Positions 1-16,124 are shown, counted from the first letter of the stretch. The stretch is DNA of 64,000 nucleotides from Paraphysomonas bandaiensis (GCA_965644295.1 CBFFRP010000406.1:186001-250000), one strand, 5' to 3'. Notes: generated by a model not told the origin, from the sequence alone. Translations and numbers: made by a program.

Positions 1-58
1 AGAAGTGCGACCTTAGATTGCTTGTCTGTTTGTTGTAACATGGGTTTTCTGTCTGCAG

Positions 59-1714
59 GCTGGACGACGCAAAGAGGGCAGTCTCCGAGGAGGAGCAACA
101 TGCCATGAAAAAGGATGGCGGTCAGTGGATGGAGGATATCTTTCCCTGCCCCTGTTGTCGGTCTGCACTTGGCAACTGTCTTCCTCATAGTCCGGATATA
201 TTCCGTCGCTGTTTGCAGGCAGCAGTAGAACGTTGTACCCAGGCTGACGATGAAAACGAAGAAGTTATGCATTGCGGAAGCGTTCAACTAATGAGCCCTG
301 AACTACAGGAATTGGCGAAGGAAATTCAACGTAAGCAAGCAGAGATGCGGAGGTGCCTGAGTGGACATCACTCATGGAAAAGTGCTGGTGTGCGAAGATG
401 TGATACCTCTGATAATGCGGAAGAGTTGAGTACCTCTGAAGCTGCAGCTTCCATGAAAGAGAAGCAAAGTATGGCCAGAAGAAAGAGTTCGCCCAGTGTG
501 AAATCATCAAATCCTGCTTCATCTTCTGCTCCTGCTCGGCGTGTGAAGCGGTTGCAAGATAGAAAGTACTGTGGGCACTCCCAGCGGCATACCAGGCATA
601 CATATGATGATCCGGAGAGTGGAGCGGATGCTGACTTACAAGAGGCAATTCGGCTTTCTCTTCTTCATTCTGTGGGAGAAGAGCGGAATGTTGATGTTGT
701 GAAACAAGAAAAACAGCCTCATTCAGCAGCTGCGTCTGAATGTCGCAATGAAGCATGTGTTCCTGTTGATGAGTCAACATCACATGATTCTGACAATGGG
801 CGTGCAGATATGTGCGTCCTGTGCGATGATAGTTTCGATAGTAGTGATGTGCTTTTCGCTGTTGGACACTGTAATCATGCATGCGTATGTGGGGTAAGTA
901 GGACAAGATACTGTCATTGGGATATATTCCAATTATATGCATACAGGTATGCGCGCTTCGGAGTCGCTTGCTCTTGAAAAACTTCAATTGCCCCGTCTGT
1001 CGACAGCATTTAGATATTATTATATGCACGAACAACCTTTCCACTTCTTTCAGTGAAATGCTGGATAAGAAAAAGTGCGCTGGGAGTAAGCTCGTTTTGC
1101 ACTCCGCGGGGCAACTCTATGCACCTAAGGCATACATGAATCGAGTGCTAAATAGGCTACAGGAGTTTAGATGTAAAGCGTGTGGAAGGGTACGACATTC
1201 TTATTTGCTGTGATTTTCTGATGCCATGTGATATCTTCAGGTTTTTGGTCCTACAGACAGCCTGCGCACGATATCGAGACATCTATTTAAAGAACACGCT
1301 TTATATATATGTGAGATTTGTGTGGGTGCAACGAATTGCTTTCCAAGTGAAATGGCTGTATACACTGAGGAGCAACTCGCCGATCATAATCGCTCCGGGG
1401 ACAGTAGTACTGGTACTCGAGGACATCCCCGATGCCATCTTTGTTCGAAGTTATTTTTCGACGAGGATGCTCTCAATTCTCACCAAACAGATGTTCATCA
1501 TGTGTGCTTTGTGTGCCAAGCAATGGGTGATTCGAATTCGATGCTTTACAATAGTGCGAATGATTTACATAACCATTTCAAGCAAGCACATCATGTATGC
1601 AAGGTTTGCAAGAAACTCCGCGTTGTGTCTGTATTTAGCAGCGCAGCATCATTAGAGGATCATATGCAACGTACTCATCCCGTCACTAACAATATGATTT
1701 CGAGATATCGATAA
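59..1714 (+). CDS. ZNF598/Hel2-like RING + C2H2 zinc-finger E3 ligase (ribosome quality control), multi-exon, 5' part outside window
   Basis: Acceptor ctgcag ends at 58. UIM-like DADLQEAIRLSL. RING CVLC...CNHACVCG|VCALRSRLL...CPVC is joined across a gtaagt..acag intron (~894-947), with a second intron at ~1190-1220. Hel2-type GHPRCHLC..FFDEDAL..H and repeated C2H2 fingers follow. Confidence 0.8.
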
Positions 1715-2787
1715 TAATAATATACCTTACTAACTTATATAGCAGAGTGTAGGGGACATTGTAGAATAGATGGTGGCTTGTGGTACTTAGTTACGTCGTC
1801 CTTGGCAGTATCAGTGTACTTATAAGAGGGAGACATCGCAAATCGCAATACTTATTACATACTAGCGACAAACGTACCCAGTGAAGTGAGTCGAAGAACT
1901 ACATGTCAATAATATTGAATTGCTTTTTGTTGAAGTAGTTAGAGAAATGCATGGATACGTAGATTGTGAAAGCGATACATTGTAAGTCAGAGAATACGAA
2001 CGCACGCAACGACTATTGATAGAATCTCAAATCTCATCTAGAAGAAAGGAGAGGATGGAAATAGTACAAAAGAAATATATTGTTGAGGAAATGTGCTTTG
2101 TAGAATGATAGCTTGGTGGTGACTATCCTTCTCTTCTTCCGTTATCTGAGTGATTCAAGCACTTCATGGGTCTGATTAGCTTCTAAATCATTCCATATAT
2201 CGACCTCATCTGCATGAGTCACAACTATTGCACAAAATTAAATAAATGAAATTTACGCAGTAGAATTCAGATTGTTGACACCCATAGCATCTGCTTCTTG
2301 GAGTCTGATAATTGGTAGCTACAAGAGTGATTTTCTTGTTAGATTTAGATATCTAGTTCTCGCAACACACGGTACAGCTGGGATTCATGTCCTCATATCC
2401 AGCACATCCCAACGACAACAATGCAGCAACTCTATCCCGTTTTTCCCAATTCCAGTGTGCTGAATGCTTTTCAAAAATCTGTTGACGGGTTGACACCTAA
2501 CGGACATATGTAGAGTATGTGTACCGTATATTGCATATCCAATAAACAGGAGAGCGCAGTAGAGTACTGTATCAGGAGTACGCCTGTATACAGCAGAGTA
2601 CATCCACGTCCATGTTGGCACTGTTGCGTTTTTGTGCAGAGAGTTCCCAACAAAGATAGAAAAATACATAACGCCTTTACGAGCTGAAGCACTCCCGTGA
2701 ATTATCACAACCATAATCGGGTGTACAAGACGAAGATATCTGCATGATTTGAATTCATCTGTACTGATCATTTCATCTGGCCCTATA

Positions 2788-5700
2788 ATGCCAACACAAA
2801 AGCCGTCAAAGGATAGTGCTGGTGATGGCAGGGGAGTGGGTAGTTCCAGTCCGCCACGACAGCCCTTTACTGATGGAACTATTAAAATATTGTCCATATC
2901 ATGTCATGATATGAAGAATGTTGAAATGCAAGTTTCACAGTTATTTTCCCAAGACAAACCAGACCCATACTTGAAGCTTGCTATTGATACTTGGTATGAT
3001 GAAACCGAGGCGCTGATGGATGTGAATTCTAACTGTGGATGGGATGATTTGATATTTGCGATTCCTGTATCTTCTAATATCATAGAGGACGAATGCTTAC
3101 GAGTTGTAGCTATGGAATACAATAGCAGGAGTAGTCATAAGTATGTCAGCAAGGGTTCAGTGCCGCTAAATAGCTTGCTGGACACACTAGATAGCTCTCG
3201 GAGCACTGAGTTAATTGTTCGTCTGTCGGATGAAGAAGATGCATTTGCTGGTACAGTAGTAGTGCATGCCTTACTTGAAAGGAAGATCGACATCGCAAAA
3301 GGTGTGTCAGAAAAGCTGACCAAAGGAACTTTACAGGTGACAAGGGTGAGGGTGAGGAAGACCAAAAATGTGGACTCAAAAGAATGGAAACCACATGTAG
3401 TTTTGAAATACCAAAATCGTTCGATGTCAACTTCAGTCATCGACTGTGCAGCGGGGAACATAGCTTGTTGGAAGAATCTTTATTTCAAGGTAGATGATAT
3501 TACGACGGACATACTTGGAGCGGATTTGAATGTTGACATTTGGAATGGTAAATCATTGGTAGGTTCTGGGAGAACTTCATTGCTGGGGACCGGTTATACA
3601 TTGGGTGAAGAATTCGAATGTCGAATCAGTTTGACAGCTGATAATGGTGAAGTTGGGTATCAAATTGTTACTGATGTGATTCTGTTTGAGGGTAGAGATA
3701 TCACCGATGACGATTTGGACATGTCGAACATCTCGCTTCAACCGAGTTTTACTTCTGGGGTAGCACGTATTTCGAGTTTGAAGCTGTTCGACGTTGATAA
3801 TACAGAACAATCAAAGGTATTGTGTTGTGCTGTTTAATTATTATATTGTTAATACGTTGTTGTAGTTAAACGGCACTCTAACATATGGCGGGAATTCCAT
3901 ACCTATCAATTCTGCAGAAGTTACAGGGTCCATGGCTGTCTGGGACAACCTTAATGTGTTTTTCGATGTGAACAGACAAGTTATTGCATCGCAGCGACTT
4001 GAGCTGGCTCTTAGTAGTGCATCTAGTGGTGGTATTGTACCGGGCCTATTCGGAAAAAAAGAAGCGAAGCCATTTGGCAAAAATCAAAATGTATCCCTCG
4101 TCCGTGCAGTTCAACAATTTGGCGAAGAGGTTTTACTCAAGTTTCCTGTAATGGACTCTAAAGGGAAACTTGCTTGTCGTGCCTCGCTGATGTCGGAAGT
4201 TTGTGTTGGCAATGATGTGAGTGGCATCGAAGTTCCATCTGTATTTGATGGCGGCTGTCTTCGAGTTTTCAAAGTAGTTGTTTCTGGGGTGGAAAGTAAG
4301 AGCTCCGCCACTCTTCGCTTTGGAGAATCACAATGGACTTTGGATGAAAGTAATTCACTGGTTTGGGAACATTTAAATATAAGGTGTCAATTGACAAGAG
4401 ATGCCCTGCTGTCTGGTACTCTCGAACTTGAGCTAGGTACGATAGGTAAAGGCCGGGTTCCTATCATAAAATTGTGTCCTTCAATTGGAAATGGATGTCG
4501 CCTGCTACTTAATATATGCCGTAGAAATAATGATCCAGTAGGAACAGCTGTAGTCTTTGCCGCTGTTTTGCGGAATGAAGTGCCTAGAACTGTGCAACCA
4601 CCACAACTCGATAACTTTTTATGTGACGGGTTGTTAATTTCATGTGTGACCTCCAGGGGCTTCAAGGAGCAAGCCCAAGTTGAGTTCAAAATTGGCCCAG
4701 CAGTATCTGATAAATCGGTAACTGTCAGAAGGGACTCCGTAAGTGATAATACCAATATCATTATACCAATAAATTGTGATGAAATCATGTCAAACAAACT
4801 GCTTGATATTGTGGTTAGGGGAGAGGGTGGCTGGACTGGTGCGGGTAATACTTCTTTGCGGAGGTTAACAAGAAATGCAGGTACTGAGGACACACTATCT
4901 GTGGACGTATTTAAGAGCTCCAGTTGTGAACTCGTGGGGAGGATTGAAATTAGAGGTAAACTAAAAGAAGCACAATCTGAGCAAACACCATCTGTACCAG
5001 AGAAAGCAGAATCGGCAACCCAGAAAGATACATCGGTGCCAGAGAAAACAGAATCGGCACCACGGAAATCTAACTCGGTTCCAGAGAAGCAAAAATTGAC
5101 ACCAGAGAAAACTGAATCGGCAACACAGAAAGATAAATCAGTACCAGAGAAAACAGAATCGGCATCAGAGAAAGCTAAGCTGATACCTGTGAAAGAAAAA
5201 TTGGCAACAGAGAAAACTAAATCGGCATCACAAAAAGATAAATCTGAGCAGGATGAATCAGGAACTATGCACGAGAAGCGAGGTTTCTTGGACGGGTTTA
5301 CGAAAGGTATTCTTCGCATTTCACAGATTAAAGCCCGTGACTTAGAGAACTTGGAGTTGATGCCATGGGATAAGCAAGATCCATTTATCAAAGTTATTGC
5401 TGGGGAGGAATTTGAGGATGAAACTGCATACCAGAGCAATGCTGGGAAGGATGCTGATTGGAATGATCTGGATATGGTGATTCCAGTGGATGTAGAGTTT
5501 TTGAGATCAGGTAAAATAACCTTCGAGGCCTGGGAACATAATACAGCAAGAAGTCACTTGCAAATTGGATGTGGCCAGGTGTCTCTGGGGCATATATCGA
5601 AGATTGGCGAAGCGTTTACCGTTTCATGTCCTATTCTGAACGATAAAAAGAAGAAATCTGGGCGGATAGAGGCCGTGGTAACACTTGAGTACCCACCGAA

Positions 5701-8700
5701 TGAAGTATCGAATACAGAAAAAGCGCCAAAAACGAAGACTGACTCTGAAATGATAGATGCCTCGAATTCAGATCATGCGGCAAATAGGAAGAATGATTCC
5801 AAAGATAAAAACGTTTCTAATATAGGTGAAGCGCACAATACGAGGAATGTTTCCAACATAAAAGGTGTTTCGGAGGTTGGAAAGAAGAACGCGCAACTGC
5901 CCAAAGGGTTTACGAAAGGTATTCTTCGCATTTCACAGATTAAAGCCCGTGACTTAAAGAACTTGGAGTTGATGCCATGGGATAAGCAAGATCCATTTAT
6001 CAAAGTTATTGCTGGGGAGGAATTTGAGGATGAAACTGCATACCAGAGCAATGCTGGGAAGGATGCTGATTGGAATGATCTGGATATGGTGATTCCAGTG
6101 GATGTAGAGTTTTTGAGATCAGGTAAAATAACCTTCGAGGCCTGGGAACATAATACATCAAGGAGTCACTTGCAAATTGGATGTGGCCAGGTGTCTCTGG
6201 AGCATATATCGAAGATTGGCGAAGAGTTTACCGTTTCATGTCCTATTCTAAACGATAAAAAGAAGAAATCTGGGCGGATAGAGGCCGTGGTAACACTTGA
6301 GTACCCACCGAAAGATGAAACGCCAAGTACTAAGCATGAATCTAACATGAAAGGTGTTTCGAGTGTAGATAATACTTCGAGTGCGAAAACTTCTTCAAGT
6401 GCTGCAGAGGTGTCCACAGGGGCGGATGTTGGAAAGAATGGCGCGCAACTTCCCAAAGGGTTCACGAAAGGTATTCTTCGTATTTCACAGATTAAAGCCC
6501 GTGACTTAAAGAACTTGGAGTTAATGCCGTTGGATAAGCAAGATCCATTTATCAAAGTTATTGCTGGGGAGGAATTTGAGGATGAAACTGCATACCAGAG
6601 CAATGCTGGGAAGGATGCTGATTGGAATGATCTGGATATGGTGATTCCAGTGGATGTAGAGTTTTTGAGATCAGGTAAAATAACCTTCGAGGCCTGGGAA
6701 CATAATACATCAAGGAGTCACTTGCAAATTGGATGTGGCCAGGTGTCTCTGGGGCATATATCGAAGATTGGCGAAGCGTTTACCGTTTCATGTCCTATTC
6801 TAAACGATAAAAAGAAGAAATCTGGGCGGATAGAGGCCGTGGTAACACTTGAGTACCCACCGAAAGATGAAACGCCAAGTACTAAGCATGAATCTAACAT
6901 GAAAGGTGTTTCGAGTGTAGATAATACTTCGAGTGCGAAAACTTCTTCAAGTGCTGCAGAGGTGTCCACAGGGGCGGATGTTGGAAAGAATGGCGCGCAA
7001 CTTCCCAAAGGGTTCACGAAAGGTATTCTTCGTATTTCACAGATTAAAGCCCGTGACTTAAAGAACTTGGAGTTAATGCCGTTGGATAAGCAAGATCCAT
7101 TTATCAAAGTTATTGCTGGGGAGGAATTTGAGGATGAAACTGCATACCAGAGCAATGCTGGGAAGGATGCTGATTGGAATGATCTGGATATGGTGATTCC
7201 AGTGGATGTAGAGTTTTTGAGATCAGGTAAAATAACCTTCGAGGCCTGGGAACATAATACATCAAGGAGTCACTTGCAAATTGGATGTGGCCAGGTGTCT
7301 CTGGGGCATATATCGAAGATTGGCGAAGCGTTTACCGTTTCATGTCCTATTCTGAACGATAAAAAGAAGAAATCTGGGCGGATAGAGGCCGTGGTAACAC
7401 TTGAGTACCCACCGAAAGAAGATTCTACTGATGCGGAGGTTGGAAAGAATGGCGCGCAACTTCCCAACGGGTTTACGAAAGGTATTCTTCGTATTTCACA
7501 GCTTAAAGCCCGTGACTTAAAGAACTTGGAGTTGATGCCATTGGATAAGCAAGATCCATTTATCAAAGTTATTGCTGGGGAAGAATTTGAGGATGAAACT
7601 GCATACCAGAGCAATGCTGGGAAGGATGCTGATTGGAATGATCTGGATATGGTGATTCCAGTGGATGTAGAGTTTTTGAGATCAGGTAAAATAACCTTCG
7701 AGGCCTGGGAACATAATACATCAAGGAGTCACTTGCAAATTGGATGTGGCCAGGTGTCTCTGGGGCATATATCGAAGATTGGCGAAGCGTTTACCGTTTC
7801 ATGTCCTATTCTAAACGATAAAAAGAAGAAATCTGGGCGGATAGAGGCCGTGGTAACACTTGAGTACCCACCGAAAGAAGATTCTACTGATGCGGAGGTT
7901 GGAAAGAATGGCGCGCAACTTCCCAAAGGGTTCACGAAAGGTATTCTTCGCATTTCACAGATTAAAGCCCGTGACTTAAAGAACTTGGAGTTGATGCCAT
8001 TGGATAAACAAGATCCATTTATCAAAGTTATTGCTGGGGAAGAATTTGAGGATGAAACTGCATACCAGAGCAATGCTGGGAAGGATGCTGATTGGAATGA
8101 TCTGGATATGGTGATTCCAGTGGATGTAGAGTTTTTGAGATCAGGTAAAATAACCTTCGAGGCCTGGGAACATAATACATCAAGGAGTCACTTGCAAATT
8201 GGATGTGGCCAGGTGTCTCTGGGGCATATATCGAAGATTGGCGAGGAGTTTACCGTTTCATGTCCTATTCTAAACGATAAAAAGAAGAAATCTGGGCGGA
8301 TAGAGGCCGTGGTAACACTTGAGTACCCACCGAAAGAAGATTCTACTGATGCGGAGGTTGGAAAGAATGGCGCGCGACTTCCCAACGGGTTTACGAAAGG
8401 TATTCTTCGTATTTCACAGATTAAAGCCCGTGACTTAAAGAACTTGGAGTTGATGCCATTGGATAAGCAAGATCCATTTATCAAAGTTATTGCTGGCTTA
8501 GTATTTGAAGGCGAAACAAAGTACCAGAGCAATGCTGGGAAGGATGCTGATTGGAATGATCTGGATATGGTGATTCCAGTGGATGTAGAGTTTTTGAGAT
8601 CAGGTAAAATAACCTTCGAGGCCTGGGAACATAATACAGCAAGAAGTCACTTGCAAATTGGATGTGGCCAGGTGTCTCTGGGGCATATATCGAAGATTGG

Positions 8701-11700
8701 CGAGGAGTTTACCGTTTCATGTCCTATTCTAAACGATAAAAAGAAGAAATCTGGGCGGATAGAGGCCGTGGTAACACTTGAGTACCCACCGAAAGAAGTG
8801 TCTAGTGAGTTTGATGGTGGACTACTTCTAATTAATCGAATAACGGCTTTTGGTGTGTCAAAGTCAGTATCTCCTCGCGTCAAGCTTACTCTTGGCACCT
8901 GGGAAGTGAAAACGGATGCACCTAATATACAGGGAGAGAAAATGGTATGGGATAGCTTGAACTTCCGGCGTGAAATATCTGTTGATGATTTAAAAACAAG
9001 CAAAGTGCTTGTAGCTCTCTGTGAAGAAGGTGGAAATGGAAACGAAGAAATAGTAGGATCGGGAAAGGTAAAAGTTATTAGTGCTGGGGCGAAATTGAAC
9101 GATGAAACTGTGCTCTCGGTAGACATGGCTTCTGCAAACGGGAAGGCTGTAGGGCGCATTGAGTTATGTACAATGGTGAGAGACGGGTACGAGCCAGATG
9201 AAGACACGCTGCAGATTTCAAATGGATTTGAATTTGGAACGTTGTATTTCAAGCAGATAAAAAGCTTTGATCTGAAAAATACTGAGTTATTTGGGAAGCA
9301 AGATCCGTTTGTTGAGTTAAAAGTTGACGAGTGGAAGGGTAAGACGTATACAAAGCAGGAAGGTGGTGGGGATGTGGTTTGGAATTTCTTGGACTTACAC
9401 TGTGACGTAACTGCTGATACCCTACGCTCCAAAGATTTGGAAATCACTGTTTGGGACGAAAACAAAACTCGAAAAAATGCCTTGATTGGCAATGCATACT
9501 GTCGACTTATTAAGCCTGGTGCATTTGTTGGAGAAGAAGTTAAACTTGCTGTATCTTTAGCTGATGAGAAGGGAAAGTATTCTGGGAGATTAGAGATATA
9601 TGCTACTTTGGTTGATGAAGAGAAGGAGCAAGAAAGGAATATTCCAGAATCCTTTCGAATGGGTGAACTAAGAATAATGCGAATAAGTGCATATTCATTG
9701 AAGAAGACTGAATTATTCGGGGAGTCGGACCGCTTTGTTGAGTTGTCTCTTGAAGACACGGACCTTCATGAGCGGACAACAGTTTTGAAGAGTGCAGGAT
9801 CTGATCCGATATGGGACCATTTGGATTTTTACACCACAGTTAATGCAAGTATAGCCAAAGTAGGAAAAATTGAATTGAAGGTATGGGATCAAGGCCATAT
9901 ATACGGGAAAACCTACATAGGAGGGGGCTCTGTTGGGCTGCGCCGCTGTGCGGCATCTTTAGGAGATGATGTTGAATTAAGAGCGAAGTTATTTGACGAC
10001 GACGATCGAGAAGCTGGTCGGATTGTTTTACTAGCAAGTATGAAAGAGGTACCTCCCAGTGCTTCAGATAAGGAGATAAGTCTTCCGGAATCGTTTACGT
10101 CGGGTATTGTACATTTCAACAGTATTTCGGCGAAAGGGCTTAAAAACAAAGAAATAATTGGAAAGCAGGTATATGTTTAACAATAATCACACTATATTGT
10201 CAACACTTGTTTAGGACCCCTACGTGAAATTGGAGCTCGCATCTTGGACAGATAGGACAACAACCCTACAAAATTGCGGCTCGGCACCTGCGTGGCCATG
10301 CACAAAGCACTTATTCTGCGAAGTTGACCGACAAATCTTATCAGATTACAAATTGAGAATTACTGTGTATGATGAGAACGAAAATAGAGCCCATAGTGTT
10401 CTTGGCACAGGCAGTGTGTCTTTACGCCCTTTGGCGCCAAAAATCAACAGAGAAGTACATTTGCAAGTGAACCTGAGTGACAAAGGTGTTGCAAGTGGAT
10501 ATGTCATCATTGCTGCCACTCTTCGGGAAGCATTGGAGACGGAAATTAGTGACACTATTCCTGAATCTGCTGTGAGATTCGCTGTTGGCTCACTCACTGT
10601 TAAAAGCGTAGCTGCGAAAGGTATAATTGGCGGTGATAACTCTATATTCGATAGTAAACAGGTGTGAAATATATTTTTCGCTGTCTTTAATAATCTTGCT
10701 TTAAGGATCTCTACGTTGTATTGGAGTTAAATGAGTGGCAGTGGAGCACACCTTATCAGAATAATTCTGGGCCAAGTGCCTCATGGGACAATTTGGAAGG
10801 TGTTGTCACTGAAATCGATGGAGATGTTGCTAAATATCAGAGACTTGCTGTATCTGTTTGGGATAAAAATACTTGTGATGATGAATTAATTGGGAAAGGA
10901 GATGTAAGCTTGAGAAAAGCAGGTGCCATGGTTGATAAAGATGTCATGATGATGGTACCAATCACCAACAAGAACAGTGAGCGCTGCGGCGTCGTTGCAC
11001 TGGAATTACAAATTAATGAAAGCACCCTGAATAAAGTATACGAGGAAAATGACGGATCTTCGAAGAATGGAATTTTAGAGATTAATGAAATTCGAATTGA
11101 AAATTTGAAAAAGTCAGGTGTGTAATAATTTATAGCGCGTAAGTTATGATATAATGATGTTCGCTAAACACAGGATGGTTTGGTAAACAAGATGTGCTTG
11201 TAGCACTATCAATAGGAACTAACTGGACATATGAAACTGATATCAACACTACAAGTGGTACCAATGCGATATGGAACTGTGATATATCCCACGAAGTTGC
11301 TGTTTCTCAACTGAACAGGGATGCTATAGCTGTTGACGTGAGGGACAAAAGTAAAAGAAGTGTTGGTCGTGGATCCTTGACTGCACGTCCATTGCTGAGT
11401 AAAATGGACCAGTGGACAGTTATTCGGGGAGATCTATTCGTTGATAAGGAGCAATGTGGTCATATAGTGATGAACTGCCGCTTCTGCATTGGAGATTCTT
11501 CCGGGCAAGGAACAAGAATGGAGCGTGTTCGAGAGGATAAGGCTGATGTGGAAAATATCTTAAAGAAAAAACTCCAAGAGGTCTTCTTTCCGCGATGACA
11601 TTCTATTTTTAATATGCTTGTAGGAATTGGAATCTGAAAGGAGAAAAATGCTTGAGATGTTAACCAGTCATACCTCTACAGTAGGGAACATCGAAACAAG

Positions 11701-13927
11701 CTTAAAGAAACAGCTGCATGAGGTTTCTTCTTTTCGACTGTTATATTCGTTTTTTGTAACTAATTCTCAGGAATTGGAACTTGAAAGGAAGAAAATGGTA
11801 GACATGCTTTCGAATCACAATAGAAAACTAGACGAGACTTTGGGGAGAATATCTCGTAGGTTACCTGATAGCCAAGGGCTAGAGCAACATGACCTGGCGA
11901 TTACTGAGTTAAACAATGTTAAGTTACCAGCGAATATTTGTGAGTGGAGAGCGTCACATGTACAGGCATGGATATCACTGAGAATGGATCTACCTCAGTA
12001 TTTACAACAGTTTCAAGATGCATCTATAGATGGTTTAGTTCTTCTTCGCCATGTGAATGACGAAATTTTGAGTGATACTCTTGGTGTAACGACGACTCTT
12101 CATCGAATGAAAATACTTGAAGGCATAGAGAGTTTAAAAGCGAAGCAGGTTGAGTACGAAAATCGGACAAAGGCGAAGAATAAGACTGATGTGCGACCAT
12201 CGCCCAAAACTCCCCCTAAAAAGAGAAAGGTGGTGAAGAAGAAAAAAAAGAATGTTGCTCAGCATACGTGGTTCGGTGACGTGCGTGAACAGAACGATTT
12301 AGAGCGCGTCAAACTTGAGAGAATAATGCGGGAGAAAAGAGCGGAGGAGCTCAAAGCGAAGAAGAAAACTAAATCTCGAAGTGAAGTGTGGAAGTTTGAA
12401 TACACAGGAGGTGCGAAACCGGTAACTGATGATGAGGAATTATATGGCCCAACCCAATCGTCGAAGACAGGCACTGCGCTATACGAGAGAACAATTTCGA
12501 ATTTGTTACAAACAGTAACAATTTCTTCGAACACCCAAGCCACAATGGGAAAGTATATCGGAGCAATTCGGCAAATTCCCCTAGACAGTGTACTTGATGA
12601 GGTCATTACAATAACGAAGGGTGCTATGTACGATGTATCTGATAGATTGATCGAAATTGAGAGGATTAAGTCCAACAAAGAAGCTATCCTGGATAGTGAT
12701 CTCGAAGGGCTCTCTACCCTGAATTCCGCTAATCCAGTATCTGGGTCTCTTGGCAATTTCGACGGTCATGATGATGATGACCCTCCGCCAACTTATGAAG
12801 AAAGTGATAGCACCGAAGTATTGCCTCAGCACCTGAACCAAACTGAGCACAGCAAGCTCGACCGCGCGGCTCTGATATTTGAATCATTTATAAATCTTCA
12901 AAATAATGATGCTAGGTGGTTGGGAAGCAATGGAAAGTTAACCAGACTTAAGTTTCATGGTGGATTTGAAAGTATATTAAGATTAAAAATATCATGGCCC
13001 CAATTCGATGCGTTGTGGAATAAACTAGATTTCCATCGAACTGGAGAACTGGATATTGAGGAGTTTCGAGAAGTTTTTGGCGATTTTTCTGAGTTTGAGT
13101 CGAAACCATCTGTCAAAAGACTTGGAGGTTCTGCCGATTCTGCTCTTGGAAACCTGGCAGATATAATGTATGATATGTGTAATTCGTTGAGAAGAGCAGG
13201 GTTCACAGTCCTGGAGATGTTTTCGAGTTTTGATAGGAATGGATCCGGAGAAGTTTCTATCCATGAATTTTGCAGTATGGTTCGCGTAATTCTTGGAAGA
13301 CATGTGGATAAGAAACAAATTTTTAGGTCTTTTGCACTGATGGATGTTGATAGCAGCAGATCAATTTCATGCAATGAAATACTGACATTGGTTTATAACG
13401 TGTGGAAGTTTCAAATGAAAGATCTTGCTGCGAAGTTATCACCCTTGGATGAGGTCATGGATGCGCAGTTGATATCGAAAATACTCAAAGAAAGAGATGA
13501 TATAAAAGCTGCTGTCAAGAAAAATTTCCCTCGAGAATGGCGAGATTTACTCGAACGAACGAAGGAATCGTACAACAAGGGACCCTTTTATCATATTTTG
13601 CAAAAAATGAACATTACCTCTACGTCATCTACTCTGGATTGTCAAAATAACACAACTTGTACACAACAATTAGACCAATCTCTGCCTACCACTCCTTCAC
13701 GTCCAAGAAAAGGCCACCCCAGCAAATCGGGTCGAAATGAATTACTACGGTACAAGGTGAATTCTTCAAGGACACACATTCCCACCAGACAAGGTGCAGT
13801 ACTAACAGTCCCTAGTGTGAAATCTTTTGGACAAGGAAATCTTACTTCTGAAGGTGCTGCGTTACGTCGTCTGCAAGACACGGAACCATCTGATGCCAAG
13901 GTCTTTACCTTAACTTCTAATTTGTAG
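2788..13927 (+). CDS. Giant (~3,600 aa) multi-C2-domain protein with coiled coil, SAM domain and EF-hands; about 7 exons
   Basis: ORFs 2749-3837, 3932-10180, 10224-10667, 10721-11125, 11194-11598 and 11627-13927 are joined by short GT-AG introns (frame checked for 3817-3865 and 10169-10214). About 18 C2-like units (DPY/DPF...VWDEN...IG). SAM-like EWRASHVQAWI...FQDASIDGLVLL...LGV...HRMKIL. EF loops DFHRTGELDIEE, DRNGSGEVSIHE and DVDSSRSISCNE. Confidence 0.85.
4985..5250 (+). repeat. Degenerate coding minisatellite (SVPEKTESATQKDK-like units) in linker of C2 protein
   Basis: Recurrent ccagagaaaac(a/t)gaatcggca units with about 21/42-nt periodicity. Confidence 0.75.
5294..8795 (+). repeat. Seven near-identical tandem C2-domain repeats within one exon
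   Basis: Unit gggtt(t/c)acgaaaggtattcttcg...gagtacccaccg starts at about 5294, 5906, 6458, 7010, 7469, 7928 and 8387 (spacings 612, 552, 552, 459, 459, 459). Confidence 0.95.
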
Positions 13928-14510
13928 AATATTTGTGAATTATTTCTATCACTTCGTTATCTGAATGATAGTCTCAGATACTACTTTTGTTAAACTGATG
14001 AAAACTATGACTGGTGGCCTAGTTGTATGAACTTATGGTTTGTCTTACCACACACATTAACCACGATTATAAGAAGTAATATATTGACGTCCAAATCAAT
14101 TAGGTTTATTTTATTACTCTCCTGAATAGTTCTATCATAGGGTGTGTTTGAATACATATCGTTTGCTTGTGCTTGACAATTACTAAAGTGTACTCGAAAT
14201 CTTTGGGTTCGACATTTATAATATGGCGACAGGCGTGGAAAGTGTTTTGAAGTATACAATCAAAGATAAACGTATTATGCTTGCCCTCCTCACTCAGACG
14301 CCCTTTGCCATCATGCCTGTGTGCTTCAGCAATACACATATAGTTCATGTGTCTATACTTACATATATATAAGATATAAGCCACAACCCTTCCTTATCCT
14401 GTTTCATGTAAACGATACCTACATCTGGGCTTCCATTTAGCTAATATTCTCTGTTTCTCCTCATTGTGGAGCTCTCCGGATTCGTCTTGTTGCTACCTAC
14501 AAAGCAGTAT

Positions 14511-14702
14511 TTTACCCTCAACAAAGTCGAACTCGCACCTTTCGTGGTGTTCTGAGGGATAAGTACTAACGCGAACAGATAATTTCTGACCACTCATAGC
14601 CTAATACTTGTGTAGACTTCATTGGGCCTTGACCAATAAACATGCATCCCAGAATGGGCTCACCTCAAGGGCATCCGGGGTATTGGGATGCCTACTGAAG
14701 TA
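14511..14702 (-). repeat. Dispersed repeat family A, copy 1 (unclassified non-autonomous element)
   Basis: Reverse complement is collinear with ~35915-36274 (acttcag.aggca.cccaatac; gctatgagtgg; gtacttatccc.ca.aacaccacga; ttgttgagggta). Confidence 0.75.
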
Positions 14703-16124
14703 AAAATGGTTGTACATTGGTGCTTGCGGTGACGAACAAACTGTTTTTGTAGCGCTAAATAGTAGGATAGCACTAGTTTGTTAAAAATTTGCTACGTGAG
14801 TTCTAATTCTTACATGCCTATTGCTATTAATCAGACATTCACTACAATCAGTATTTTGTTACGTATAACGAACATTATTAAAACTCTAGTTGTGATCGCA
14901 GTGAACGGACCGCCTTCTGGACACTAGTAAATAGAAACTGGTCGTCACATATTAGAACCTGAATGGCAACCATCTTGAGTATCTCAGTAAGAGTTGACAG
15001 CACAGAGACTCATATGTTGTAAACGAGGTGTTGAGAATATATATCTGGGTAATTTCAGGTGTAATATGCTCAGGAGTGTTGACATTCGTAGATTAAACGT
15101 TGGGTATAGACTAAAAGTGTGTCTGAATCAGGCAAACAAATCGATTCATGTCTCGAATCAATTCGCTTCTGCTTCCTTTGAAGTTTCTTCGACTTTTTTG
15201 TCCGCTCTTTAGAATAAGATTTACTCTGTTCAGGAGACATCTTGAAGTGTAAGAATGTGCCGAATTTAATGAAGTTGCCTGTATATCATTTTGCCCGGTG
15301 ATTAGGTCACTGTGAGTGTTGTCTTATACTGTCATGACGTACATCATTAGAGTGGAGTCTAAATAGACTGTTACTTTTTCCGTTCATATCAACCGTGATT
15401 TTTGAGTATGGCTGAAAGTTAAAACCAGAGTATGCTTGAGGATTATGACACACTCCTCTGTAATACATGCTTGAGAAAGATGAGCAAGGTGTAACCAAAA
15501 CGAAATTAAGAGTATAATTATTTATTCATTCTTGTTGAATCTATGTATATTTCCATGGTGTACTTCTGTACTTGCTCTTCGCAACTCTGCCCGGCTGAAT
15601 GCATCACCTTGCTATAGCGTCTCTCAAGCAAACTTTACAATGCAACAGCATCCGCACAGTAAATCTAATATAAATTATTATTGCTGTGGGCTTAAAAATA
15701 AATGAACTTAAACACGACACACTTATTAACGAAGAAATTGTGATACGCATTTCTCATAAGTTATTGCTAGGTACTACAGTGATTGCTTAACTGCAACCAA
15801 TCTATATCTTACAATCTTAAATTAACACTATCTTATACACTCAGTATATTTCAGTTTCCTTCATATAATTCACAGCATTTCCTTAAATTTATGCATACTG
15901 TCTTTTCAAACTGTATTCTACATTCAACGGTTATAATACAAAAGCCTTAAAGTACAGCTATTAATTGCTTACCAATATGCAAACTCAGCAATCCCTCTCA
16001 ATTCAAAGCTTAAATTGACCCTACACACCACGAGACCTAACTGACGAATACGCATCCACCGAAACCCATATAGGACAAACTGTTGGACGTATAGCTCAAT
16101 TAGAAGATTTACTTTTGCAATGTA

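Follow-up and report, generated by a model that had tools for sequence, protein, structure and literature searches.

A giant C2-array, SAM and EF-hand gene of Paraphysomonas bandaiensis and its family in stramenopiles and dinoflagellates

The stretch of Paraphysomonas bandaiensis DNA analysed here (GCA_965644295.1, CBFFRP010000406.1:186001-250000; 64,000 nucleotides, referred to as the window) carries on its plus strand, at 2788-13927, one expressed gene of seven exons for a soluble protein of 3617 amino acids (aa). In the protein, 18 C2 units (u1-u18) precede a set of short helical repeats; a SAM domain comes next, then a polybasic patch and an EF-hand domain that resembles calmodulin. Judged from its sequence and the order of its parts, the gene is a member of a large, conserved and unnamed family of stramenopiles and dinoflagellates, found in chrysophytes and oomycetes as well as in one labyrinthulid and one dinoflagellate. 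It belongs neither to the ferlins, extended synaptotagmins (E-Syts), MCTPs, synaptotagmins or copines nor to C2CD3 or STIM. With regard to function, the Ca2+ sensing of the protein probably resides in the EF-hand domain, and there is about an even chance that it would serve as a Ca2+-gated, self-associating peripheral membrane tether or scaffold, as opposed to a membrane-anchored fusion sensor.

Gene structure and transcripts

A read search found the 3' 4 kb of the gene in 20 public runs from 10 studies, including poly(A)-selected marine metatranscriptomes, which carry the 3' part at at least 99% identity. Positions 9400-14400 of the window were compared with the reads of four runs. In run X1 a single RNA contig of 5087 nt extends to 14092 from ~8770, where the repeat array ends; introns 2-6 are excised exactly at the predicted sites and exon 7 is uninterrupted. 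Three of these same splice joints were found in run X4, and the DNA run X18 displayed the unspliced form. Units u13-u18, the SAM domain and the EF-hands thus reside on one spliced RNA, and the C2 array and the SAM/EF part consequently belong to a single gene, a result that holds for at least the 3' 5.3 kb. A first-pass annotation, made from the sequence alone, had proposed a single giant gene at this locus, and the contig that joins the end of the array to the SAM/EF part bears this out; the converse possibility, that the two parts are separate genes, is ruled out by the presence of both on that contig.

On the plus strand, 2788-13927 consists of consecutive open frames with only very short gaps between them. 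The ATG at 2788 is the first after an in-frame stop and the stop codon occupies 13925-13927, so that the limits given in the first-pass annotation are exact. The seven exons sum to 10,854 nt, which is divisible by 3 (script check), and the protein mass was obtained by summation over the exon pieces. All six introns, located from the gaps and verified by script, have GT..AG ends (sizes in Table 1). Intron 1 was accepted on the basis of its size and GT-AG ends, the restoration of the frame with completion of u3, and the uninterrupted open reading frame of an orthologue that is colinear across the junction; exon 1 is colinear with residues 287-607 of this orthologue (P0166).

No membrane anchor was apparent in the protein, as the first-pass annotation had also held: the Kyte-Doolittle mean stays at or below 1.21 in every 19-residue window, and neither a Gly2 for myristoylation nor a C-terminal CaaX motif is present. 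In the long relatives described below, Kyte-Doolittle peaks are mostly < 1.8 and located in beta-strands, with no convincing transmembrane segment. One Achlya model peaks at 2.24; this segment is doubtful and may be a gene-model error.

Several further observations concern the 3' half of the gene. Within window 11581-11869, intron 5 and exon 6 form a tandem duplicate of intron 6 and the first 33 codons of exon 7, with a mean column identity of 76% and the matches mostly confined to the first ~90 columns, and the end of exon 5 holds a third, partial copy of the helical motif (...LKKKLQE / ...LKKQLHE). A contig from run X5, a poly(A) marine metatranscriptome (depth ~6), joins 11722 to 11788 by way of an AG acceptor 17 nt into exon 7. 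This joint would shift the frame; it may come from a small share of mis-spliced transcripts, or from the assembly being misled by the duplicated motif. At its 3' end, the transcript terminates inside a dispersed repeat (14047-14130) that overlaps the end of the 3' untranslated region and has at least 28 further copies (77-88% identity) on many contigs of the genome; in the DNA run X18, a 45-nt contig at 14067-14102 reached a depth of ~3950 compared with ~106 nearby.

The C-terminal module and its family

Searches and folds were performed on single exons or parts of them throughout, and the pieces of an intron-split unit were each analysed separately. When exon 7 was compared by phmmer with 1.84 billion cluster representatives (E up to 1e-3), 567 relatives were recovered, of which 71 scored below 1e-30; many of the 567 have lengths of 2000-3700 aa and are matched at their C-terminus. 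As many of them share the layout of the present protein, the earlier statement that it matches no recognised family is borne out in part only, namely for the named families. Pfam scans revealed the same succession of C2 array, SAM and EF-hands in eleven relatives, several metagenomic proteins among them. Named proteins with this layout come from the oomycetes Aphanomyces cochlioides (KAG9415725.1, 3457 aa) and Pythium oligandrum (TMW56722.1, 3456 aa), the labyrinthulid Hondaea fermentalgiana (GBG32623.1, 3590 aa), the dinoflagellate Durusdinium trenchii (CAK9078624.1, 3744 aa) and the chrysophyte Mallomonas (a partial EukProt model). Other named members belong to Achlya (Achlya hypogyna OQR98624.1), Epipyxis (EukProt model) and Ochromonas, and the closest named relatives are chrysophytes. 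In the databases the relatives are called hypothetical, "Ca2+-dependent lipid-binding protein" or, in two cases and by automatic naming, synaptotagmin.

An alignment of 24 C-terminal modules (A1) contains 16 invariant and 24 nearly invariant columns. The shared motifs are the SAM domain, the Lys/Arg run, W-x-FEYTG, an amphipathic helix, KLTRLKF, three EF loops and the KKNFPR-x-WRD helix. The present protein carries all four C-terminal signatures (W-x-FEYTG, KLTRLKF, FDRNGSG and KKNFPR-x-WRD) and displays the combination by which the family was delimited, namely at least ten C2 units, then SAM, then C-terminal EF-hands in one polypeptide without a transmembrane segment. The relatives resemble it in part order, in size (2000-3700 aa) and in the lack of a transmembrane helix, and their C-terminal modules are 22-54% identical. 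Conversely, the present gene differs from them in possessing seven near-identical copies of one C2 unit and in lacking four N-terminal units of the nearest orthologue; likewise, some relatives have an extra EF-hand before the SAM domain where the present protein has short helical repeats. The C-terminal module is single copy in the 62.6-Mb assembly, and a look for paralogues of it in the genome returned only a weak EF-hand match. Word-indexed searches with two full-length relatives gave few rows and no further named taxa. In full-text searches of the literature, which do not extend to most subscription journals, no paper describing the layout or characterising a member was found.

Within exon 7, Pfam detected SAM_2 (E 4.6e-10), SAM_1 (E 1e-8) and EF-hand_1 (E 1.5e-13, three stretches). 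An AlphaFold2 model computed with 23 relatives placed the SAM domain at residues 50-140, followed by long helices and a four-EF domain at 365-610. The best structural match of the SAM domain was CNK/HYP (VIA-align Z 13.8, rmsd 1.6 A over 86 residues), with TIR-1 (Z 13.5), DGK-delta (12.2) and PHC3 (11.6) as well as tankyrase, Shank3 and SARM1 (Z 11-14) also matched; in addition, the family profile matches the liprin and SARM1 SAMs in PDB by sequence. These nearest structures are polymerising or pairing SAMs, yet the same fold is also found in monomeric and heterodimeric SAMs. The head-to-tail polymers of the DGK-delta, PHC, tankyrase and Shank3 type are built through complementary mid-loop and end-helix surfaces. 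Downstream of the SAM domain, a Lys/Arg-rich run occupies the same position in most relatives. The EF part was matched by calmodulin and calcineurin B, both by Foldseek and by profile, and comprises three EF loops and one degenerate motif. The SAM domain, the basic patch and the three EF-hand loops of the first-pass annotation are accordingly all retained. Its coiled coil, on the other hand, is reduced to three short helical repeats of ~33 aa and the later long helices, as judged from AlphaFold2 and not from a dedicated coiled-coil predictor. Structure searches with exon 7 (Foldseek against PDB, a wide VIA-align search and a shape search of ESM Atlas) yielded nothing beyond generic matches to SAM and EF-hand, and an ESM Atlas feature search gave EF-hand clusters only.

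Two archaeal labels were encountered in the course of these searches. A 2182-aa family member (P0011, NCBI RYH30865.1) is deposited under an "archaeon" metagenome-assembled genome, and EF-hand protein clusters matched by shape in ESM Atlas are labelled Thermoplasmatota. The labels probably reflect eukaryotic contigs binned into archaeal metagenome-assembled genomes.

Table 1. Features of the gene, in window coordinates
Feature	Position	Strand	Details and basis
Whole coding region	2788-13927	+	7 exons, 3617 codons + stop, ~401 kDa; open reading frames and junction reading
Exon 1	2788-3816	+	343 aa; u1 2857-3291, u2 3304-3693, first strands of u3
Intron 1	3817-3865	+	49 nt, GT-AG; inferred
Exon 2	3866-10168	+	2101 aa; rest of u3, u4, u5, PEK-rich linker, u6-u12, u13-u15, first strands of u16
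u4 + u5, divergent C2 units, Pfam-invisible	4232-4978	+	family profile E 1e-8 and 4e-6
Low-complexity Pro/Glu/Lys/Ser(/Thr)-rich linker	4996-5244	+	21-bp coding tandem repeat; Tandem Repeats Finder and translation
Seven near-identical C2 units u6-u12	5288-8794	+	starts 612, 552, 552, 459, 459, 459 nt apart
u13, u14, u15	8798-10057	+	family profile E 4e-24 to 2e-44
u16, u17, u18	10082-11490	+	split by introns 2, 3, 4 at or near the DP[YF] strand start
Intron 2	10169-10214	+	46 nt; removed in RNA contig X1, kept in DNA run X18
Exon 3	10215-10661	+	
Intron 3	10662-10705	+	44 nt; removed in X1 and X4
Exon 4	10706-11117	+	
Intron 4	11118-11173	+	56 nt, phase 1; removed in X1
Exon 5	11174-11580	+	
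Intron 5	11581-11623	+	43 nt; removed in X1 and X4
Exon 6	11624-11722	+	33-aa helical repeat; tandem duplicate of exon 7 start
Intron 6	11723-11770	+	48 nt; removed in X1 and X4
Exon 7	11771-13927	+	718 aa + stop; conserved C-terminal module; unbroken in RNA contig
SAM domain	11918-12169	+	exon-7 residues 50-133; Pfam; AlphaFold2 predicted local distance difference test (pLDDT) ~90
Polybasic patch	12206-12250	+	exon-7 residues 146-160; net +10 over residues 141-175 (35 residues)
Family signature W-x-F-E-Y-[TS]-G	12383-12409	+	alignment A1; W207, F209, E210, Y211 invariant or nearly
Conserved amphipathic helix (R-x-I-P ... DEV ... K-x-A-M-[FY]-[DE]-[VL]-S)	12569-12670	+	alignment; AlphaFold2 helix 275-319
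Calmodulin-like domain, four EF motifs, then two conserved basic helices (KKNFPR-x-WRD)	12857-13606	+	Pfam EF-hand_1/6/7; AlphaFold2 pLDDT ~80-90
EF loop 1	13028-13063	+	residues 420-431; His at position 3, not fully canonical
EF loop 2	13232-13267	+	residues 488-499; canonical D-x-N-x-S-G...E
EF loop 3	13343-13378	+	residues 525-536; D-x-D-x-S-R...E
3' untranslated region	13928-14092	+	~165 nt; RNA contigs of X1 and X5 end at 14089-14092

The C2 array

Pfam C2 scored E 1.7e-55 over nine stretches in exon 2 alone. For the complete count, a family C2 profile was seeded with five Pfam-positive units and iterated over the exons and 17 long relatives. Scanned over all six frames of window 1-16000, this profile marked 18 C2 units on the plus strand, and no unit elsewhere in that range, neither before 2857 nor on the other strand; upstream C2 exons that would correspond to four further units of the orthologue were likewise not found before 2857 in the same scan. 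Whole units, and the larger pieces of the split units (u3, u16, u17 and u18), scored between E 1e-6 and 1e-45. The short upstream pieces are weak by themselves (u3 E 0.16, u18 E 0.19), and that of u17 went undetected in the six-frame scan. Sensitivity to Pfam varied along the array: u1 is clear to the family profile (E 1e-29; u2 E 8e-19) and weak in Pfam C2 (E 0.016), and u14 and u15 gave Pfam values of E 1.6e-11 and 1.2e-8. The only sequence-level match in PDB was to synaptotagmin-7 and covered one C2 domain (E 7e-5).

The divergent pair u4-u5 was modelled by AlphaFold2 from an alignment of orthologues, resulting in two eight-stranded beta-sandwiches with a pLDDT of 84.5. The first Foldseek match of this model was a ciliary-tip central-pair chain (E 1e-10). 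The second, C2A-C2B of E-Syt2 (E 1e-8), was the best match to a tandem-C2 crystal structure, and otoferlin, myoferlin, dysferlin, cPLA2 and the copine BON1 were among the others. The estimate of about 18 C2 domains in the first-pass annotation therefore agrees with the profile count and with the C2-type fold of u4-u5.

The composition of the array was compared with that of L003, the closest orthologous locus (51-54% identity), which is a 12.2-kb contig of a different sample. L003 encodes 16 C2 units that have diverged from one another (22-43% identity) and has no tandem repeat. Units u1-u5 correspond to o2-o6, u1 being matched to the fifth of the L003 units; u13-u15 correspond one-to-one to o8-o10, and the three split units u16-u18 to the three split units of L003. 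All of u6-u12, by contrast, correspond to the single unit o7, at 44-46% aa identity. This mapping indicates that the four units at the N-terminal end were lost in the present lineage and that one unit acquired six further copies, giving 18 units versus 16. The 405-nt cores of u6-u12 differ pairwise at 1-20 nt (95-99.8% nucleotide identity), and Tandem Repeats Finder reported a 459-bp period with 4 copies at 97% identity. The linkers between them fall into three classes of 69, 49 and 18 aa, the 18-aa class being an internally shortened form of the 49-aa one. With the same profile, most long relatives have 12-17 units, and the 7-10 counted in divergent oomycete models are probably an undercount. 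The array length has thus been kept within the family range despite turnover of its units, which suggests that unit number, and with it reach and avidity, matters more than unit identity. The recent amplification provides a natural test of C2 number versus function.

Two side observations relate to the array. The 21-bp repeat at 4996-5244, which lies directly before the amplified units, has ~12 copies and higher-order periods of 63 and 105 bp. Elsewhere in the same genome, two loci (G000:C123:329942-330280 and G000:C144:204753-205169) encode C2 units 34-37% identical to u14/u15; one of them sits in an open frame of 2354 aa, and neither shares the SAM/EF C-terminal module.

Proposed function, alternatives and known systems

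The likely Ca2+-binding capacity of the array was judged from sequence, by reading the five canonical synaptotagmin/PKC-type ligand positions from the profile alignment of the 18 units; loop 1 holds two of these positions and loop 3 the other three (D-x-D-x5-D). None of the 18 has all five acidic ligands. Units u1, u6-u12 and u14-u17 present E, D, D/E, N and a non-acidic residue at these positions, and the remaining six (u2-u5, u13 and u18) have essentially no acidic ligands. EF loops 2 and 3 are, in turn, canonical and nearly invariant across the family. Since the C2 units lack full acidic sites and the EF loops are canonical, control by Ca2+ is more likely to be found in the EF domain than in the C2 array, and the EF domain is probably where the protein senses Ca2+.

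In the mechanism proposed here, the C2 array would constitute a long multivalent arm that makes many weak contacts with membranes or membrane-associated partners, with the polybasic patch adding affinity for acidic lipids. The SAM domain could join molecules into oligomers, or pair with another SAM protein. The EF domain would be the Ca2+ switch: in its Ca2+-bound form it would probably grip or release one of the adjoining conserved amphipathic helices and thereby change assembly or membrane attachment, the two conserved amphipathic/basic helices that flank it being plausible intramolecular targets. A wider proposal, tentative and on balance doubtful, is that the family constitutes an unrecognised class of Ca2+-controlled tether, ancestral to stramenopiles and dinoflagellates, in which a soluble arm of 12-18 C2 units is oligomerised by SAM and governed by a calmodulin-like switch, with selection acting on the length of the array and not on the identity of its units. 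Selection on length is suggested by the loss of four units combined with the amplification of one unit to seven. The Ca2+-regulated, self-assembling membrane scaffold put forward in the first-pass annotation is a reasonable reading, and the extrusome, contractile vacuole and cortex named there would be no more than candidate sites.

A number of points weigh against the tether or scaffold. Most of the C2 units are net acidic (u1 and u5-u18: net 0 to -12), which, when Ca2+ is not bound, argues against simple electrostatic binding to acidic membranes; the units could serve in protein binding instead. In some C2 domains, such as that of cPLA2, Ca2+ can be coordinated by Asn and Glu, and the C2 units may therefore still bind Ca2+. 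The polybasic patch closely resembles a classical nuclear import signal. In the exon 7 model, the overall pLDDT is 67 and the predicted template modelling score 0.33, so that contacts between domains are unreadable from it. Furthermore, read coverage excludes the 5' 6 kb of the transcript, with intron 1 and the amplified array, and the count of seven copies is that of the assembly, the short-read contigs breaking at the array.

These last points bear on the possibility that the gene model is in part an artefact, with the array and the SAM/EF part belonging to separate genes, or with the seven-copy array expanded or collapsed during assembly and the true count other than 18. Short-read contigs of both RNA and DNA do break at or near the array (X1 at ~8770, X18 at ~9240) and none spans it, and intron 1 has no read support. 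Nevertheless, such an artefact is quite unlikely: one spliced contig holds u13-u18 together with SAM and EF, the annotated proteins of four named genera carry the full layout, and the seven copies are non-identical, with three linker classes and 1-20 differing sites, unlike a simple assembly stutter. A nuclear role appears very improbable indeed. On that view nuclear import would be directed by the PPKKRKV-type patch, with the nuclear envelope, or partners associated with chromatin, as the targets bound by the C2 array. The patch is closely similar to the monopartite signal of SV40 large T, and the basic run is conserved in position. In the relatives, however, this run is a variable Lys/Arg cluster and not a conserved import motif, which would be just as expected of a lipid-binding stretch or a flexible basic linker, and proteins that combine multiple C2 domains with SAM and EF domains typically function in the cytoplasm, at membranes or as scaffolds.

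An unlikely alternative, albeit one with more in its favour, is a linker with a structural role in the cortical cytoskeleton or the flagellar apparatus, comparable to C2CD3, CC2D2A and RPGRIP1L with their Ca2+-independent C2 domains joining microtubules to membrane, in which case the EF part would be centrin-like. All named organisms with members can form flagellated cells. The protein has no membrane anchor, and its C2 units are without complete Ca2+ sites, as is reported for ancestral ciliary C2 proteins (PMC3495828). The ciliary-tip chain that heads the Foldseek results for u4-u5 is accompanied by further rows from central-apparatus chains, and several structural matches of the EF region are axonemal proteins. 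Still, these are generic beta-sandwich and EF-hand matches with high rmsd that stand among E-Syt, ferlin and calmodulin, and no C2CD3-N, B9 or other ciliary C2 subtype scored at the thresholds used, the relatives giving marginal cross-matches only.

The Ca2+-gated tether or scaffold would be of interest beyond this gene. Multi-C2 proteins (synaptotagmins, ferlins, E-Syts and MCTPs) are the main known Ca2+-dependent membrane machines of animals, plants and fungi, and to our knowledge every one of these families is held by a transmembrane segment. The present family differs in having two to three times more C2 units than any of them, no anchor, and an oligomerisation domain and a calmodulin-like sensor of its own. 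Ecologically dominant protists have conserved it, among them oomycetes pathogenic to plants and animals and dinoflagellates that live in symbiosis with corals. It is expressed in marine plankton, and its function would represent a new element of the protist Ca2+ and membrane toolkit.

Among known proteins, no placement was obtained from Pfam, as only C2, SAM and EF-hand passed the cut-offs; KGK, zf-C2HCIx2C, DUF6888, Gaa1 and Transposase_29 had no significant stretch and were discarded as repeat-boosted noise. The first-pass annotation had already set the protein apart from ferlins, E-Syts and MCTPs, and the features that define these families are indeed absent. Ferlins (otoferlin, dysferlin and myoferlin) are similar in being large, in having many C2 domains and Ca2+-linked membrane roles, and as structural matches of u4-u5. 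Their 5-8 C2 domains are accompanied by FerA/FerB/DysF elements and an anchoring transmembrane segment at the C-terminus, whereas the present protein has 18 C2 units, SAM and EF-hands, no transmembrane helix and no ferlin-specific Pfam match (E up to 0.1-10). E-Syts/tricalbins and MCTPs likewise use tandem C2 arrays as membrane tethers, and C2A-C2B of E-Syt2 matches u4-u5. Between them they have 3-5 C2 domains, combined in E-Syt with an N-terminal membrane hairpin and an SMP lipid-transfer domain and in MCTP, where the C2 domains number three, with C-terminal transmembrane helices. In contrast, neither an SMP match nor a hydrophobic segment was found here, nor a PRT_C Pfam match or transmembrane helix of the MCTP kind. 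Synaptotagmins, with an N-terminal transmembrane helix and exactly two C2 domains, differ from the 18 units and missing helix of the present protein.

Similarly, STIM combines EF-hands and SAM in one Ca2+-responsive protein, and the EF-SAM structure of C. elegans STIM matches the SAM part (Z 7.6). The EF pair of STIM lies directly against the SAM domain within the lumen of the endoplasmic reticulum, and this unit is followed by a transmembrane helix and a cytosolic coiled coil/SOAR region; here, SAM comes first, ~230 residues before a four-EF domain, and no transmembrane helix is present. C2CD3 is alike in being soluble with several C2 domains predicted to be Ca2+-independent, and the C2 domains of C2CD3 and other ciliary multi-C2 proteins are predicted not to bind Ca2+ (PMC3495828). 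It has, however, a distinctive N-terminal C2 and five PKC-type C2 domains, with no SAM or EF, and Pfam C2_C2CD3_N was not reported for any exon (E up to 0.1-10), with a marginal partial match in one relative. As to its probable role, the present protein is akin to the C2 tethers.

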